From NCBI GenBank assembly GCA_977016875.1, contig CDRNST010000339.1, positions 186,001 to 250,000 on the forward strand: 64,000 nucleotides of DNA. The letters run 5' to 3'. Of the stretch, positions 37,017 to 46,778 are shown one piece after another. This DNA is from Pavona decussata. Taxonomy: Eukaryota. Under the pieces are notes generated by a model. It saw only the letters and a list, made by a program, of their open reading frames with translations, was not told where the DNA came from and did no database searches. Each line of letters opens with the position of its first letter. Position 1 is the first letter of the stretch. A program made the translations under genes and the position numbers.

Positions 37017-37786
37017 CTACTCGTGGTGTTCATCGTACGGTCGGGGCTGATAAGGTTTAGCGGGTTTCTGTTTCTTAGCAACCGCATCCATGACGTTCGC
37101 ATTTTTGTTACCAGCGGGACCAGTGACGTACTGACAACCATCAGCATCAGGATTGATGACGCAAGCAGCAAACTTCTTCATGTGGTTGTCAAGGTAACTG
37201 AGTGGCGAGGACCCCTGGGACAACACCTGGTAATGGAAATCCTTTTCACTGAATTTTTTGCTCGCTGCTTCAACTTTGGCCTGCGTTCGGTTACGCACCT
37301 GCCAGATTTTCAACTGGCCGATCATGTATGCGGTGGCCTGGCCCGGGTCACTCTGATAACGAGTGACGTCTTTCACGGCTTTGTCGGTCTTGTCCCAGGC
37401 CTTATCGGCAAAGAGCTTCAACGCTTCCCACCGTTTCATTCCTGCGAAGAACCATTAAGGAGGACGTATCATACAATATCCGTAAGCAAATTTCCCCTGA
37501 AAGTACCTCTGCAGAAACAGTGAGAGGGGTAATGGGCACGAATTTGGTACGTGAGGGATTCTGGGTTTCTGAATTGGGTGCAGAAATCAACTGTTATTTG
37601 AAAACAGTTTAATGAGGCAGAAATCCCAGGAGCGACGTTACCGAAAGTAAATCAACATTGAATCTCTCAAATAATCCAAGAAATGACTGTCTGGACTCTA
37701 CGCTGATTTCGAGAACATGATTTCGAGAAAGAAAAAGTTCATGACGATTACGTTATCTCATTACCTTCCAGAAGAGATCTGAATGC

Positions 37787-37829
<43 letters not shown>

Positions 37830-39757
37830 ACTCGCATAAAAAACAGGGAGGTACGGAGGCATGCTCCCCCGGGAAATGTTGAGACTTCACCCTCTGAAAG
37901 GTTGTTTTCGACATTCCTGAGACCGGAGAAGCAGTTTTCTATCCCTAAATTGTTGGCCATGTTTTAAACTATATCATACGATCGTGTGGGAGATAAAGAA
38001 GCGTTTTCAATTGCAGGTTAGTGGATAGCGAATATTGTAAATCTGGTGTCTTGGGACTTTGTGTTTCAAAACTGTCAAACTAGTCTGTTCATCTAGGTCC
38101 TCATCAGAACCGAAGGCTGAATCATCATTGTCACATCAAAGTACCGGCGGATATCATATAGCAAGCAGCAGGACTTTTCGTCCGAACTCTAACTTCACAT
38201 AAAAACCCTGGACTCATGTTAGAATTTATTACAAAAAAGTCTAGATTACTTTGTTACCAGTAACCATACCTGCAGAAGGCGGTGCTAACTTTTGAGCCCG
38301 TGGATGAATGTTTAAATGATTACTTTCTAAGTGTGACGTGTGCTTATAATAATTTCGCAAAAAGGAATCAGTTTCTTGCAAATCCTGCTAAAAAATGAAG
38401 TTTGACAATATTTGGCAGTTTTAAAGTTGGACACTTTCAGGAGTGAAAAGTTCAACCAACGAACCTTTATAATGAAGGCCAGTGTCCATCATAAGACGCA
38501 GTGCACGCCATATTTGCCACTTGAGCATCCCGTAAAGCTGAAGAGGGTTGTTATCGTATGTGTCTGTCTCTTCAGCGATCAGCGGATTCTCGGCATATAG
38601 TGCCCAGCCCTCTGTGAACGCGGTGTAATAGGACGCACCATTCAACCAACTGATGACACCTTCACAGCTATCACCAAACAACTCTCCAAAACCTTGAACC
38701 TGCAAGAGAACACGAAATGGCGAGTTCGAACATTTATTGTTATTACATTTACTAAATTTACGAGATGTTAAAGACGGCTGTGGCAAAGACTGCCATTCAT
38801 GTTCAAGTCAGTACTTTTAAAACTTTTCAAATTGTGATCTCTTTAGTTCAATCTGTCAATTACAAGTGTTGTAATTGAAACATTGACAGAATAATGTGCG
38901 TGGGCTTAGTTTTGATAATTGAAGTGTGATAATTTCGTAAATGAACGCTTTCGAGGAGTACTCTTCTATTGTGCTGTATATAATACAGGAGCAGATGAAG
39001 AGGTTTGGGTTTAAAATCCTAAGGTGCGGCCACCCAATGGAAGCTACTGTGCAAACTTTCCAGCGGTACTGTCATGTTACAGATTTGACCGTATGGATGA
39101 AATCCTGAATTGCGACCTTTCACGTAACAGGTATTTAATCAACTTCCTCGTGTTTGGTAAAGATCCCATAATTAATTACATAGTGACACAACAAAAAACA
39201 ACAACTCGGTGTGGCTGAAAATGGGGAAGTGGGTGACGAAGTGCTCTACTAAGAAGTCAGCCCCGTGTACTCCTGGAGTATCGCGCTAAGAAAACTTACG
39301 GCCCAGGGTGGTGCACAGAAGGTATGGAGGAGGGAGTAGGGCCTCCTCCCAGGGCCAACTGTGACCATTCCTGGGTAGAGAGGAGGGAGTTGGGCCTCCT
39401 CTCTGATTGGAGGGAGTTGGGCCTCCAGTCTAACCTAAATCCAAGGAGTACATAATGGAGGGAGTTGGGCCTCAATAATTTCGAGTCTATGGGGGCAAAA
39501 GTGTGACAAGAGGAGCACTTCATCCCCATTCCCAGGTTTATTGAATATTCTCAAATACATTCAGACTGTCACTAAAGTGGCTAAAATCAATCTAACATCT
39601 CCTCCAGGTCCTTAACTAGTATAATTACCCTAAGAGTATGTAACGTAAAGCAGATAATTTGCAATTTACAATTTGGTTGTCGAGATAACAGGTTAGGATC
39701 AAGTGGCCAATATATCGACATAGCAATTGACATGATTATTATTATTATTATTGTTAT

Positions 39758-39801
<44 letters not shown>

Positions 39802-42800
39802 ACAGAACAAATGAAACAATAATTAACATTAAGTAGCTTTGAGGAACTAGCTAATAGCAATTGAGAAAGTTTGAGAAGTCCTCTGTCCAGTGATTCTAAG
39901 CAGGGGGAAAGGAGTCCTGTTAGAGTTCACGAAATGAAATTATTGAGGGGAAACAAATAGAGATCAAACTCTTGGGTGGGATGGGTGGGAACGAAAGCGA
40001 ACGCTACTGCTTCGAGAATCGTTTTGCCTTGTTGCTTGAGTTGAAGCAAAAGACCACGAGCACATGGAGCATGCGCACGATACGGTAACATGGCGTCATT
40101 TGATTGGATAGTTTGGTGTCACGGAGGCTCAAATGGTTCTCACGTGCGGTCACGCGACAATCACTGGACAAAGTTCAAAGCTCAAACAAGAGTTGTTGAT
40201 TAACTAAAATTTATTTCCGATGTTCAATAAATTGTGATTTAATCAACTTCCTCGTGTTTGGTAAAGATCCCATAATTAATTACATAGTGACACAACAAAA
40301 AACAACAACTCGGTGTGGCTGAAAATGGGGAAGTGGGTGACGAAGTGCTCTACTAAGAAGTCAGCCCCGTGTACTCCTGGAGTATCGCGCTAAGAAAACT
40401 TACGGCCCAGGGTGGTGCACAGAAGGTATGGAGGAGGGAGTAGGGCCTCCTCCCAGGGCCAACTGTGACCATTCCTGGGTAGAGAGGAGGGAGTTGGGCC
40501 TCCTCTCTGATTGGAGGGAGTTGGGCCTCCAGTCTAACCTAAATCCAAGGAGTACATAATGGAGGGAGTTGGGCCTCAATAATTTCGAGTCTATGGGGGC
40601 AAAAGTGTGACAAGAGGAGCACTTCATCCCCACAAAATGCAAAGCATTCCCCCATTGACGAGCCACAGAAAATACCAGTAAAAACACTAAAAGCAAGTAA
40701 AAATTTACAATAGGTTCACTAATGTCTGAGGAACCTGTGCCAGAACTGAGGGTGGGGTTCTGATGTATCTCTCAAAGCAGTCGGAAGACCATCTACCCAA
40801 AACCTTAATTAACCATGGGGATAAATTTGCTGAAGCAGCCGCTGTTGCCGCACCTATCCGAAAACTATGCCCGGCGAATTCACTTGAGTCTAACCCTCCC
40901 CTAGAAAGTAAAAGCCTTGTTTCACTTGTGAGTTTTTCCCGAGTAAGGAATGATCCAGATACATAGGAAAAAAGGGGGCCTGTGGTGGGAAAGGGGGTCC
41001 TTGAGGCCAAGTATGCTTGCATAGCAAAAATAGGGCATAGGTTGGAGTTTGTCCTCCCAATTACTATGGTTTGCCCCTTTCTAAAGGGGTCTGTCTTTGA
41101 AACCTTTAACCGAACCAGCATATACTTGGGAGAAGAGTGAGGCATAAATGTTAAATCTGTTACCATCAAGTGAAGTTTGGGGTCAAAAATAGAATTACAT
41201 GTCAGTTCACTTATACGTAGGAAACCAAAAAAGGCAAGGGTCATTGCGGCCCAGACCATGAGAGAGTCTTTGTTGTCCGTATATTTGACATTGAGAAGGT
41301 GGTAGAATAAGTTTAGCAGTTGCAATGTGATTGGTCTGCGAACTTTAGAATGTGCCCCTTGGGAGCGTTTTATTCCCCGAAGAATTAGCTGCAGGCGAAG
41401 AAAACCGGCCATATGCAGCTCATAGCCATTACTGGAGTGGTAGTGTTTAATGGCGGATAGATAATTCTTGATAGTACTATGTTGGACTGTACGGGCCATG
41501 TAGACCGAGAAGTTGATCAGAGTAGCCTCATCAATGGGAAGCTTGGGAGTAATTCTCATTTGTGAACAGAAGGCATAAAATTGTCGCACACCAGAACTGT
41601 ACGTTTTCTTAGAGTTCTGGGCAAGGGCCATCCCCAGGAAATACTGAGCTTCTCTACTTAGAGACTGTACACATGGGCTGGGATGGGGTCTGGAGACACA
41701 TTGGACTGAGGAGCTAGCTGGCGAAAACGCTCCATCAGAGAGGATTTAACGCTACTGCTTCGAGAATCGTTTTGCCTTGTTGCTTGAGTTGAAGCAAAAG
41801 ACCACGAGCACATGGAGCATGCGCACGATACGGTAACATGGCGTCATTTGATTGGATAGTTTGGTGTCACGGAGGCTCAAATGGTTCTCACGTGCGGTCA
41901 CGCGACAATCACTGGACAAAGTTCAAAGCTCAAACAAGAGTTGTTGATTAACTAAAATTTATTTCCGATGTTCAATAAATTGTGATTTAGCAGTGTTTTA
42001 TCATGGTGTCACCTATTGTACTGACAAAGTGTTTTTTTTTTCTTTTATATATGGATAATTTTTTATCATTCAAATGAGAAGTTTCTACTTGCTATTACAG
42101 ATAACGGTAGCTCTTACCCTTTAAGCTCCAATAATGATCAGCAACTAATTTCTCATTTATATTGTTATACAATATCGCTACATACAGAGCATGAAAATAA
42201 ACGGAATGATTCCAGAAGATATTTTCCCAACTAATACCATATAAGAAATAGATGCAGAGCAGTGGCAACATATAAATATAAAATAAAAGTCATAAGTCTT
42301 TTGGATAGACTCCTCCGGTGTGCCTATTCAAATGAAAGCTACAAAGTAGTACTTCTTACGGTGTCGTTAACTTATCCATATTTTATTAAAATGAAGTTTG
42401 TGGATTATTTTTTACCATTTCAGGTTTAAGCGCGGGTTCCAGTTTGGGGCTGAAAGAGTCTACAACTCCATTCACACCAACAAAAAAAGTTCAATTAAAC
42501 TAGGTTTAACCAAATGAAAATTGGCAACAGAAAGCTGAATCGTTGGCTTTGCCATACGATTCAAGTAAACTTTAACTTGTGCTTTCATTTGTGCTAGGTC
42601 TGTAGTCGACAAAAATCCGAAAGCAGCTTTTATGAAGGAAACAATTTTAAACTGTGTTTAACTAAACAGCTCAGTTTTAAACGTGTTTAGGCCTTGGTGT
42701 GAATGGGGCATTAGTCTGTAGAGGGATTAGGGGGTTGGTTTCTGAAAGAAATAATGCGGTAGTGCGCCGGTGGGGGGAGTTAAAATAGATGTTTGGTTTT

Positions 42801-45800
42801 ATCAACAGATTTGAAAACGGGTAATTTGGTCACTATAACGACGTCGCTCTGACGAAGGCCTAACGCTCGAAACGTCAGCACTCGAATCTCTTCACGGTGG
42901 CCAATTTACCTTATCAATTCCATTGGTAAAACGGATTACCTGTGTGTGGTGCCCGGGCCTTGCTTCATGTGCTCCAACTGAGATAGCATTGTACCTCGGT
43001 CCCATGTCCTTCAAATAGAACGGTAATCTGTAGTGCGAGGGCCTGGAGCAACTTTTACCGCTGGCCGAGTAACTCTGGGAACCAGTACCCGGGTTGAAGT
43101 TTGCGACGAGTAGGACTGGGCAGTTAGGAGTGCTTTGCTTGTTCCCAGTGTGGTGGAACATCTTAGTTGTCTTCGGTGCAAGGCTACTAAGGACCGCTAA
43201 AACAATGTAACAGCACTTGAGTAAGTCAGTTATCAAATCTCGATATAACACGATATGACTCAACTGCGCGCAGTCCGTTAAGGAGGCAAATTTTTTCTCA
43301 GTGCAACAGTGCCCTCGTTGACAGTGTGCTGCAATTTGCTAACATTTTCTCTGCAAATGATATGCATACGTTACAACGTATAAAAGGTAGACAACTAGTA
43401 CACTTAAAAGTCAAATGGCAATTTTCCTTTGCGAGACCAATTGCGAGGAGGGGGTGTTACACGCGCAAAATAATCCGCAAGAAACGGCGTTGCGTTGTCA
43501 ACAGGTTGTTGCGTTGCAAGGTACGGAAAACGTTGCTTCGTGTTATAGCACTTTTACTGTTGCAAGCTCTTGTTAATGGTAACATTTCATTGAAGAATTT
43601 TTTTTTTTTTTTACAATTTGATATGCTTAGGGCACAAGAGAAATAAGCGCCCTGTCTGTTAGCGCTCTTCCTTCGGCGCTAAATGTTCACAGTACCGTGG
43701 ACATGCCATTATAATCCTATACGTTGGTTTTTTAGACAGCCGAATTAGGGGACTTCTAGTGAACAGCTATTGCAAACTTACTGTTGACATAATCGAACCA
43801 GGTCAACATGGCTTTGTATCGCTTGGGGCAGTAAATCTTTGCCGTCTCCATGCTGGTGCACTTGGAGAATGCATCTTTGTTGCTCTCGTTTTCTGGAATT
43901 TTCTCGTCATTGAAAAACATGCTCTGATCTTCCAAATGCTTTTTAAAGTCTTCAACGGCTTCGCCCTCGTCCTGCTTGCCAGTGATTTTCTTAGCGATTT
44001 CCACGGCTCTTGGATAAAGCTGGTTCAGCATTTTTTCGCCCAGGTTATAGACTTCATCCGGAGTCATCTGATTGGTTGTGAAGTAAGGTAATATCATCTC
44101 GTAAGCTCTCTTCCCACTGAGTGGTTCCCCACTCGGCAGTTTTCCAGTTGTTTTTATTCCAGTGTTGATACCGTTCTTGTAAATGTAAGGCAAAGGAAGT
44201 GTAGCTAAACCACTGGATATATTACTGGGGACGCAGTACTGAGAGTGGTTGAACTCCAAGTAGTTCAATAAACTGTCCAGCGGTTTCCCCACATATTCAA
44301 CCAGGGCGTCATTTATGGAGGCTCGCACTGACTTTTTATGTTCCTTCTCCCACGCCTCTGAGGCGCTTTTCTCGAGGTCGGCCAGCCATTTTGGATCTTG
44401 CATCGCCTTTGTATAGGATTCATTTAAAACACCTATTGAAAAAGAAACAATGGAATGAGCGCATAACTGAGATTTAAAGAGAAACTTAAAAAATCAGTGT
44501 CACCTATTTTTAGTGTCACTATGAATTAAACGTATTTGTTTCAACGAAATCGTTAAAATGATGGTTGAGTTTTGTTAATAATAACTCTACTTGTACACAG
44601 AAACTACTGTTAATCATGTTTGGCTGTGGATGGCTAGGATGGAAGTGGATTGCAACTTGAAAAAATTGTCCGCCTTTTTTAAATTCTTCCTGTGTATTTT
44701 AGAGAAGTCGCGAAAAACTGATTATAGTTAGTTCTTCTAGGAGAAAAATCTTATTATTTTCTTCCCGGTGTTATAAGAGCAACTTCATGCTACAAACTAG
44801 GTTCTTTGTAAAATGATTGAGCAGTTGACCAAAATATAACCTGCAAAACAGGAGTTATTTATTTTTATCTTTTGCGTTTTTCGGTCGAGCGGAGGCAAGC
44901 GCGGAGCGCGAGTGCGACAGGAGGGGCTCAAAAATACAACAAAATGGACGTGACAATTTGATTCCAATTTCTGCGACCACCTGGGATCCCTTTTTGCTTC
45001 CCCCTCTGCCACGCCCCCCCCCCCCCCCCCCTTCCACTTCCTTAGTAAGGCCTGAAGGCCTGATACTCCCACATGTTTCCATGTGATCGAAGAATTCTTT
45101 GTTATCTGTCCACGAAATCCACCGTCCAATATTAATTCATGTTCACACGATCCCATTGTCCACACTCCATGACATTCCATTCTACCCTTCACCCCATTGC
45201 GCCGTCCACAAAATCCACCTGTCCCATAAACCATTCCAAAATTGTTCACTCCGGCCCATTCAGGAGGCATTTCCGGTCGAGAAGCACTTGCCGTTCCGGG
45301 GTCATTTGCGGTGTAGTACCAAAGAAGTATTTGGACCATATTCGTCCTCTATATCGAGCCATATATATGAAGACAGTATTTACAAAATAATTATCGAACC
45401 ACACTGCATGATGCCTTAGCTTGGTGCCTGGGGAATGCCAGCCGATGACAGCTGATCTACAGAGCTATTTGACCCTTAGCATAAAAACAATACTCGAAAA
45501 ACCAAATTGTTTTAAGAACTATTGCACAAGCCCAAGAGGTTTCTAATAGGAACATGTTAACTCAGTCAAAACAAAAACAAATAAAAGAAACGTTGGAATG
45601 AGCTTACCTTCTGGTCCACCTTGTGAAACCTTAAGATAGGTACGCTGAATGGAATACAATCCATCCTGACAGTCTTCTTCCGACCGAACAAATCCCGCTT
45701 TAACACCATATTTCACGTTCTCGATGTACTGCATCAACGAGTCGTTCAGCTTCTTTAGGTGGTCGATCACGAAGTTCACATCGTCCACGGTTTTTGGCCG

Positions 45801-46436
45801 TATGCCCCAACTTTCATAGGTGAAATGAGCTTTGACATCGCTGCCCACGTCACAAATCGGTTGCCAACAGAACTTGTTAGGGCCAAGCATCCAGTCGCCT
45901 GCATAGTAATTCTCATCGTACGGAGCTCCGAAGTTGCTTTGTAAAAAGTGTTTCGCCTGAGCAATGGCCTTGATCTCGCGTGGTTTGAGTTTGTCACTAT
46001 CCACGCGATTGTCGAGCTCATTTGCTTCGTTGTACAATCGACTGGCGGCATCGGTCCTGTCACGGATGGCGTAAGGGTGTGCGTTGTATGGACTGAAGTC
46101 TTGGCGAACGGATTCGGGCGTTGAATCGGGATCGTAAACTGCGTTATTCGGTCGCATCTTGTAGTAAGTTGACTTGACTTTTTTCAGAAAGTCATCTAAC
46201 CCGACGCGTTTAGCTTCATCTGAATAATCGCAGGGTTTCGATTGCACGATTTCCGAATTCTCTTTTGATCCTTCCTTGCCGCAGCTTCCACTTTCGGACA
46301 ACTTCGCCCCACCAACCGCAATAAGAATAATTCCTACAATGCAGAAGACTATGGCTGCAGCCAAAGCGATGTAAAAAAGCCTTTTAGACGGTGGTTTCAC
46401 CTCCCTTAAAACGTACTCTTTGTCCTGGAACTCCAT
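37017..46436 (-). CDS. DUF885-family protein with N-terminal transmembrane anchor (putative metallopeptidase-like ectoenzyme), 798 aa; exons 46436-45608, 44432-43782, 43196-42940, 38699-38465, 37441-37017
   Basis: Five GT-AG exons join in frame (829+651+257+235+425 = 2397 nt). Hydrophobic LFYIALAAAIVFCIVGIILIAVG near the N-terminus. DUF885 signature motifs HEARPGHHTQ, FTEGWALYAE, RALRLMMDTGLH and RYQSDPGQATAYMIG. Confidence 0.88.
37787..37828. repeat. poly(A) tract, ~42 nt, in intron 4 of DUF885 gene 1
   Basis: Homopolymer run. Confidence 0.9.
39133..39528 (-). repeat. Split direct repeat B2 (3' terminus of the element)
   Basis: Identical by eye to 40237-40632. Confidence 0.95.
40000..40632 (-). 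repeat. Internal B1-A2 repeat junction (circle-junction-like)
   Basis: A2 (40000-40241) overlaps B1 (40237-40632) by ATTTA. Confidence 0.93.
40705..41631 (-). CDS. Tyrosine recombinase (DIRS/Ngaro-type integrase), 308 aa
   Basis: Uninterrupted ORF with the catalytic set: FFGFLRISE (R), SKTD (K), GHSFRIGAAT (H-x-x-R), LGRW (W) and FERYIR (Y); N-terminal core-binding region with STIKNYLSAI. Confidence 0.93.
   Translation of the reverse strand: MALAQNSKKTYSSGVRQFYAFCSQMRITPKLPIDEATLINFSVYMARTVQHSTIKNYLSAIKHYHSSNGYELHMAGFLRLQLILRGIKRSQGAHSKVRRPITLQLLNLFYHLLNVKYTDNKDSLMVWAAMTLAFFGFLRISELTCNSIFDPKLHLMVTDLTFMPHSSPKYMLVRLKVSKTDPFRKGQTIVIGRTNSNLCPIFAMQAYLASRTPFPTTGPLFSYVSGSFLTREKLTSETRLLLSRGGLDSSEFAGHSFRIGAATAAASANLSPWLIKVLGRWSSDCFERYIRTPPSVLAQVPQTLVNLL
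41658..41735 (-). pseudogene. Remnant C-terminus of the RT/RNase H ORF of the YR element
   Basis: MERFRQLAPQSNVSPDPIPAHVYSL* resembles the ERFRxLAP...PxPIP tail of DIRS/Ngaro RNase H; it overlaps the open YR frame in a different phase. Confidence 0.65.
41748..41989 (-). repeat. Split direct repeat A1 (5' terminus; promoter-like)
   Basis: Identical by eye to 40000-40241; sense strand has CACGTG, CCAAT, CGCCATGTT (YY1-like) and TGCGCATG (NRF1-like). Confidence 0.9.
42465..42709. mobile_element. Small TIR element (PIF/Harbinger-like MITE)
   Basis: Inverted termini CCATTCACACCAA / TTGGTGTGAATGG about 240 bp apart; superfamily assignment tentative. Confidence 0.55.
42788..42940. mobile_element. 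Penelope-like element terminal-repeat remnant in inverted arrangement
   Basis: 42788-42840 aligns with the reverse complement of 42890-42940 (TTTTATCAAC..TTGA.AA..GGTAA.TTGG.CAC) and brackets a hammerhead motif. Confidence 0.6.
42846..42879 (+). ncRNA. Minimal type I hammerhead ribozyme motif (Penelope-type)
   Basis: GCT-CTGACGA-A-GGCC-TAAC-GCTC-GAAA-CG-TC-AGC: catalytic boxes, 3-bp stem I, palindromic ACGT stem III; stem II has a mismatch. Confidence 0.7.
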
Positions 46437-46778
46437 GTTTTTTAACCACGATGTAATCCGACCCTGATACTGAACTATGCATGCGTGACTCAATTTTTGT
46501 CCACGTCCAGGCCTTGCGCTTGTCACTTGAAAAGGGATAAATTTGTATTTAACCCTTCTGGCCTCGTTTAAGGTAAAATATTATTTTCATTTTTAACCGG
46601 TAAGAAGGGCTTACTTTCCGCGTAATTTGAATACGAACAAAATAATAATAAAATGGTAGCTATTTCGGAATACGCTCAATAGACAATTTAATATCCTTTT
46701 GTGTGCATTCAAATTAGCTCCTATATTAGCCCTATATTATTTATATTAGCCCCTATATTTTCCTTCAGTATAGCTCTC

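Follow-up and report, generated by a model that had tools for sequence, protein, structure and literature searches.

We analysed a stretch of 64,000 nucleotides (nt) from Pavona decussata, positions 186,001 to 250,000 of contig CDRNST010000339.1 (C339:186001-250000, hereafter the window), and describe on its minus strand a 2.86 kb element that combines two pairs of long direct repeats with an open reading frame (ORF) for a tyrosine recombinase (YR). We interpret this element, with a probability of about 0.8, as cDNA that was made from a spliced RNA of a young tyrosine-recombinase retrotransposon of the Ngaro type and then integrated. The copy is very young and is a one-off by-product rather than a self-standing family.

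Read along the minus strand, the element consists of a 5' repeat A1 (242 nt), a YR ORF of 308 amino acids, an internal copy of the 3' repeat (B1, 396 nt), an internal copy of the 5' repeat (A2, 242 nt), a spacer of 471 nt with a run of 37 A, and the terminal repeat B2 (396 nt), with A1 and A2 identical at 242/242 positions and B1 and B2 at 396/396 (Table 1). B1 runs into A2 with 5 nt shared (TAAAT), and their joint, which reads ...GTTGATTAA/ATCACAATTT..., is the equivalent of a circle junction; the element's own 3' end also reads ...GTTGATTAA, and there is no target-site duplication. Repeat A is 249 nt long in full copies of the family, and A1 in the window lacks the final 10 nt, a 5' deletion beginning inside it, while its leading TAA may stem from the flank or from a crossover. 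A1 is separated from the YR ORF by 116 nt. This stretch includes a foreign ORF tail of 25 codons, a segment that doubles as a linker, the YR frame remaining open from this point into YR. The window copy carries a short ORF upstream of YR, has lost the N-terminal part of gag (gag-N) and has no coding sequence for reverse transcriptase (RT); an ORF of 51 amino acids that crosses both deletion junctions described below matched no recorded protein in an exact look-up.

Within repeat B we found four hairpins (39268-39479 on the minus strand, and the equivalent B1 stretch at 40372-40583) with GGAGG/CCUCC-type stems and a near-constant loop of 8 nt, CCCAACUC (once CCCUACUC). Folding 241 nt of the repeat gave -101 kcal/mol (z = -7.07 against shuffles), and this predicted hairpin array could serve as a protein-binding or packaging array.

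Table 1. Coordinates of the element, of the surrounding host-gene exon ORFs and of related A-spacer-B units elsewhere in the assembly. Plain positions are those of the window; L031 is the numbering of the full-length copy on contig C91.
Feature	Position	Strand	Details
A1, 5' terminal repeat	41748-41989	-	242 nt: TAA plus 239 nt of the 249-nt family repeat A
gag exon 1 remnant	41736-41747	-	12 nt, AAATCCTCTCTG; equals L031 3000-3011
Start of exon 2	41658-41735	-	final 25 codons and stop of the RT/RNase H ORF (MERFRQ...YSL*)
Predicted tyrosine recombinase ORF	40705-41631	-	308 amino acids, intact
B1, internal copy of 3' repeat	40237-40632	-	396 nt
A2, internal copy of 5' repeat	40000-40241	-
A2-B2 spacer	39529-39999	-	471 nt; A37 at 39761-39797; AATAAA at 39537-39542
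B2, 3' terminal repeat	39133-39528	-	396 nt
Host-gene exon ORFs	45543-46526, 43756-44403, 38421-38786, 37017-37439	-	PF05960 recorded for three
A-spacer-B units	C129:2729505-2730584; C129:3027642-3028748; C93:946574-947646; C56:3815717-3816740		independent loci, 1.1 kb

A low-copy parent family of Ngaro type

Searching the 602 Mb assembly (G000), we found an end-to-end match to the element at one place only, the window itself, with the other matches either beginning at element position 248, after ~3 kb of gag-RT sequence, or representing solo A-spacer-B units. On contig C91 (C91:1948383-1954191, equal to L031 1984-7792, 5809 nt) a copy 98.6% identical to that of the window reads A1(249)-gag-RT/RNase H-YR-B1-A2-spacer-B2; within it both repeat pairs match at 100%, and its pol is broken into two ORFs in different frames. 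A second copy, on contig C169 (C169:2701186-2705908), is 99.8% identical to the window copy and reads A-gag-pol-YR-B, without A2-spacer-B2. These two copies hold 2969-2976 nt of extra sequence separating A1 from the YR leader, in which Pfam recognised SAP in gag (29.7 bits), RVT_1 (34.8 bits) and RVT_3 (21.7 bits), and in two other assemblies of the same species the C169 locus has an uninterrupted gag (423-503 amino acids, with SAP), an uninterrupted pol (495 amino acids, RVT_1) and a YR identical to that of the window. The family is low in copy number, the remainder being four A-spacer-B units of 1.1 kb (92-96% identity) and older fragments on contigs C80, C250 and C49. The A-gag-pol-YR-B and A-spacer-B forms are reciprocal products, of recombination between A or B repeats or of resolution at two B/A junctions.

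Evaluating 12 copies, we found the element ends to be constant (AT-CACAATTT ... GTTGATTAA); a fixed target trinucleotide was unsupported across them, the constancy being limited to the element ends. Three families whose spacers are otherwise dissimilar share the motif CAATAAA(N)(Y)TGGG immediately ahead of B2 (window 39537-39542; L031 ~7380; L072 ~8990; L076 ~7530). The poly(A) of the spacer is longest in the youngest copy, at 37 nt in the window against 20 nt on C91 and 13-16 nt or none in older solo units, and we discarded it as a conserved replication feature because two other families lack it or place it differently. One sequencing-run contig (run X7) joins A2 to A1 (L031 6821 to 2045) with an offset of 54 nt from the repeat register, which could represent a variant A repeat or a mis-join.

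To place the family, we compared it with the Ngaro elements, a group of tyrosine-recombinase retrotransposons (Goodwin and Poulter 2004, summarised in PMC4157794 and PMC9210276). PMC4157794 defines them by split direct repeats, A1...B1-A2...B2, whose internal copies lie downstream of YR, and the absence of a methyltransferase distinguishes them from DIRS1 and PAT. In the window copy B1-A2 follows directly after YR, as it does in the full-length C91 copy. The catalytic R..HxxR..(H/W)..Y residues are present by motif alignment: LRISE...HSFR...GRW...ERY line up with Cre R173/E176, H289/R292, W315 and Y324, a motif-level correspondence with a weak E-value of 0.4. Pfam matches to the SAM-like N-domain of phage integrases fall below the cut-off, a word search with the linker plus YR gave 1358 homologues, some of them with PF00589, and the window protein shows no amino-acid difference from the YR that the full-length copy at the C169 locus encodes (P0001). 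Judged by these comparisons, the 308-amino-acid ORF is predicted to be an intact tyrosine recombinase. No methyltransferase match occurs in any full-copy ORF, and the pol ORF directly overlaps YR.

With RT and RNase H present in the full C91 and C169 copies and reduced to 25 codons in the window, the family is Ngaro and the window copy a defective derivative of it. The parent family shares with Ngaro its gag, RT/RNase H and YR, its overlapping ORFs and split direct repeats, and the lack of both a methyltransferase and a target duplication, and the window copy departs from this in missing gag and RT/RNase H. It does resemble Cryptons (PMC3212892) in having YR as its sole enzyme, no target duplication and a short identity common to the element junction and the target. 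Cryptons, however, have neither long split direct repeats nor a near-identical RT-bearing progenitor or partner, whereas the window copy has the repeats and is 98.6-99.8% identical to RT-bearing Ngaro copies.

Much of a preliminary description of this locus, made from the sequence alone, is borne out by these results. It had read a minus-strand split-direct-repeat layout with identical repeats, and the same layout recurs on C91 and in other species; it had taken the YR catalytic residues to be intact, as the Cre alignment indicates, and gag, RT and RNase H to be absent save for a 25-codon tail, which now maps to the end of the RT/RNase H ORF. The Ngaro-type architecture and the very young age that it gave the element are both supported, and the C91 and C169 copies supply the full-length gag-RT-RNase H partner for which it had proposed a search.

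The two junctions of the window copy

Aligned with full copies, the window copy shows two gaps, 12 nt apart. The larger gap, of 2197 nt, closes at junction 2 (J2, between 41736 and 41735), the exon-exon junction. On its donor side the 12-mer is followed in full copies by GTGAGT (G/GTGAGT in gag, the slash marking the cut); on its acceptor side the window resumes at L031 5209, right after CTCTTTCTCGCTTTCAG (...TCTCGCTTTCAG/), a polypyrimidine tract ending in CAG. The gap is bounded exactly by the GT donor (G/GTGAGT) and the AG acceptor (TTTCAG/ATGG), with an ambiguity of 1 nt (G). In sense orientation the full element (5809 nt) contains GTRAGT three times, two of these in B1 and B2, and the coding region has a single GTGAGT; strong acceptors number nine. 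The chance that both ends of the gap would match splice sites is ~1e-6, with the 1 nt ambiguity allowed for. Because the gap has exact GT..AG borders, we interpret it as a removed intron and the copy as made from spliced RNA.

The smaller gap, of 777 nt, closes at junction 1 (J1, between 41748 and 41747), where A position 242 is joined to L031 3000 bluntly and without microhomology, and it takes out the rest of gag upstream of the 12 nt remnant, including the gag-N coding part. The 20-mers across J1 and J2 each occur once in the 602 Mb, the flanks of the window copy are unique in the assembly, as fits an independent insertion, and neither junction patterns of the L072 family (described below) nor a degenerate all-family pattern found another spliced-form copy in this genome.

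We checked the reading frame by arithmetic and by translation of two natural exons, and used single exons or natural intronless ORFs as search queries. In gag the donor interrupts a Gly codon in phase 1 (Gly-Glu-Phe codons), and the acceptor falls between two codons of the RT/RNase H frame, 25 codons ahead of its stop. The splice is in frame, such that the gag frame continues into the YR frame and stays open into the recombinase domain. In every family examined the YR frame opens 21-33 nt upstream of the acceptor; in the L054 family its first Met is at codon 161, so that independent initiation cannot give the whole YR there. Even families with no more than 65% nucleotide identity keep the donor octamer GGTGAGTT unaltered, and this holds for the third, synonymous positions of its Gly and Glu codons as well.

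Intronless copies in other genomes

The word search with linker plus YR also revealed P0053 (541 amino acids, with a SAP domain), which reads ...YVKEIQT/DGPFS... where the related gag P0121 reads ...YVKEIQT/GEFFDL. P0053 is a single continuous ORF in L072 (ERZ25067868), lying between A1 and B1-A2-spacer-B2 with repeats that are 100% identical, and at the nucleotide level L072 reads ...CAGACCG/ATGGCCCG against ...CAGACCG/GTGAGTTTT in the unspliced relative L074. The same spliced-form element recurs in ERZ25067868 as L077 and L078, at 98.8-99.4% identity and with the identical junction, different flanks and intact ORFs of 543 and 597 amino acids. These are three independent loci, each reading A1-SAP-GagN::YR (541-597 amino acids)-B1-A2-spacer-B2, and their 999 nt alignment holds too few informative sites to tell descent among the three copies.

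In another assembly (ERZ26858540) L084, from a second such family, reads ...ACAATCCG/ATGGAGAGG, and comparison with the two splice sites of L054, an unspliced element of this genome, shows the same precise intron loss. Two loci of ERZ25071797, L075 and L076 (the latter element at ~3582-8230), hold YR-only split-direct-repeat elements with an ORF of 390 amino acids that belongs to a protein cluster of 70 members. Their homology to full Ngaro copies begins exactly at the acceptor, after ...ATATATACCATAG/, and is preceded by ~1.4 kb unrelated to gag or RT, part of which resembles another repeat of the Pavona decussata assembly; this stretch may be a retained, remodelled intron or derive from a chimeric spliced RNA. 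Recombinase-bearing split-direct-repeat elements without RT occupy several loci in related genomes and, as the junction sequences indicate, intron removal became fixed in DNA on at least three occasions, across three families.

Origin of the window copy

We propose that genomic RNA of the family would run from A1 to a few nt inside B2, beyond AATAAA, with the 3' end placed just inside B2 because AATAAA adjoins B2 upstream in three families. A fraction of this RNA would be spliced from the gag donor G/GTGAGT to the acceptor ...TTTCAG/ATGG, which lies 25 codons short of the RT/RNase H stop; this would take out 2197 nt and bring the gag frame into phase with the YR frame. As the spliced RNA would keep all terminal and internal repeats (A, B1-A2 and B2), it could be copied in trans by the RT of a full copy, completed on the B1-A2 template and integrated by YR without a target duplication. 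The extra gap of 777 nt, which begins where A1 breaks off and stops 12 nt short of the donor, would most likely reflect an RT template switch or a later deletion and, in removing gag-N, would leave the 308-amino-acid YR ORF with its own ATG. We infer splicing as the cause, RT acting in trans, the RNA ends and a functional Gag-N::YR protein from these comparisons. DIRS-1 offers a precedent both for trans action, its RT acting on an RT-less construct, and for the need of an internal complementary region (PMC7192593), and the window copy itself might be mobilisable in trans, with no sign of having moved in this way.

Several observations weigh against this origin. The J1 gap ends in AG but starts with TG (CG by the window copy's own A2), and we rejected a canonical splice there, with both an alternative alignment and microhomology lacking, so that J1 requires a second event of another kind. 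For this event we consider a template switch of RT on the spliced RNA to have about an even chance, a later genomic deletion to be somewhat less likely than that, and non-canonical splicing of a 12 nt micro-exon to be unlikely. The donor encodes GEF and the acceptor SLSRFQ, the conserved RNase H terminus, and coding constraint thus accounts for part of the conservation at these sites, and for most of it at the acceptor. The conserved in-frame relation, being inherited, should be counted once only. In some lineages YR is in frame with RNase H (P0044, 388 amino acids; P0153 from Paramuricea clavata, 592 amino acids; ...SRFQ...RF...), which makes read-through or frameshifting an alternative or additional route to YR, and, from these sequences, some Ngaro lineages may make YR as part of Pol. 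The spliced joint (3011 to 5209) was absent from the Logan contigs of four sequencing runs, which held the unspliced form only and which drop rare isoforms.

Extending the spliced-RNA origin beyond this locus, we see an evenly balanced case for a broader proposal. The intron would be conserved and functional in the Ngaro elements of this animal group, the recombinase would normally be made as a SAP Gag-N::YR fusion from a spliced sub-genomic mRNA, and the spliced RNA, having all cis repeats, would be trans-mobilisable and would repeatedly seed RT-less, recombinase-only copies that form small families in some species.

As an alternative, the element could belong to a propagating minimal non-autonomous family, a 2.86 kb unit with its own integrase that takes RT in trans and has spread in this genome. 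All cis repeats and an intact YR are kept, DIRS-1 RT works in trans (PMC7192593), and related genomes hold RT-less, YR-carrying split-repeat elements at 2-3 independent loci. For this assembly, however, such a family is contradicted by the single occurrence of each junction 20-mer, by the zero matches to the degenerate any-family spliced-junction pattern and by the form of all remaining matches (from position 248 after gag-RT, or solo units), and we consider it improbable. The preliminary description had proposed a minimal parasite borrowing RT as one of its two options, and with the A1-to-YR junction occurring once in 602 Mb that family falls away for this genome, while elements fitting the concept do exist in related ones; its idea of borrowed RT survives for the origin of the copy, which would have needed RT in trans because it would descend from a spliced RNA without RT coding.

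A full-length insertion could also have undergone one or two ordinary genomic deletions that ended by chance at splice-like sequence. Only one such copy exists and J1 resembles a plain blunt deletion, but J2 coincides with the only GTGAGT of the coding region and a strong acceptor (chance ~1e-6), and copies of two further families, found in other assemblies, lack the identical intron, which makes this account very improbable. The preliminary description had named a single copy deleted after insertion as what would overturn it: the single copy is indeed what the assembly holds, but its larger gap is a precise intron removal rather than a plain deletion.

We give comparably little credence to a Crypton-like movement or origin, as a DNA circle that YR excises and integrates without reverse transcription. 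The preliminary description had named such mobility as its other option, and nothing in these results supports it. Such a route would fit the lack of a target duplication and the TAAAT common to the circle-junction equivalent and both ends of the window copy, and the A-internal-B (C169) and A-spacer-B units are products expected from resolving two B/A junctions. Those same products, however, arise by homologous recombination between repeats, like solo long terminal repeats (LTRs), the loss of an intron demands an RNA stage, and the assembly shows no excision footprint or empty site, neither flank having a second match and no empty-site haplotig being present in it.

An assembly artefact behind the duplicated repeats or the internal deletion is scarcely credible: perfectly identical repeats can confuse assemblers, and J1 and J2 are known from assembled sequence alone, but the same architecture recurs on C91, at three loci in another species and in additional families, run contigs cross the B1/A2 and A2-spacer-B2 joints of the family, and an ENA assembly (L081) reads the same, 100% identical over 9.8 kb, although this is probably the same data and is not counted as independent.

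Considering precedents for an integrated copy of spliced RNA, we find the closest, by analogy, in L1 SpIREs and in the retroelements derived from MLV SD' RNA. L1 SpIREs are reportedly integrated copies of spliced retroelement RNA. For MLV, PMC2925334 describes SD' RNA and splice-associated retroelements in which copies of spliced RNA are integrated. The likeness is that a spliced sub-genomic RNA with cis signals is reverse transcribed and integrated, leaving a genomic copy minus exactly one intron. The difference is that those precedents are LTR, retroviral or long interspersed nuclear elements (LINEs), whereas here a YR retrotransposon with split direct repeats is involved, and that its integration enzyme is kept in the spliced product rather than lost. 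A second parallel concerns expression. Drosophila copia makes a spliced sub-genomic gag RNA. More generally, PMC5580714 describes a spliced sub-genomic gag RNA in Ty1/Copia elements, and the resemblance lies in host splicing that shifts the ratio of element proteins from one transcript; the Copia splice drops pol for more Gag, whereas here gag-C and pol are dropped, which would give a Gag-N::recombinase fusion. In the literature searched we found no description of Ngaro splicing, of a conserved intron, of a SAP-Gag-N::YR fusion or of spliced-form copies, which is not proof of novelty.

These observations matter in that the expression of the DIRS/Ngaro recombinase from overlapping ORFs, and the replication of these elements, are poorly understood, and a genomic copy of spliced RNA would be a natural record of splicing at one defined, conserved intron. 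The predicted product, a SAP DNA-binding Gag-N fused to YR, is searchable in RNA and protein data, and Ngaro RT and repeat completion could, on this reasoning, act in trans on RNA without RT coding. For 'YR-only' split-repeat elements of invertebrates, we suggest looking for a spliced parent before calling them Cryptons or a new class.

The element lies in sense orientation within an intron of a DUF885-type host gene (37017-46526, minus strand; exon ORFs in Table 1). Inside the same host-gene region, 1.3 kb from the element, is a tract of 41 A (37788-37828, plus strand), which may be the tail of another retroposed sequence.

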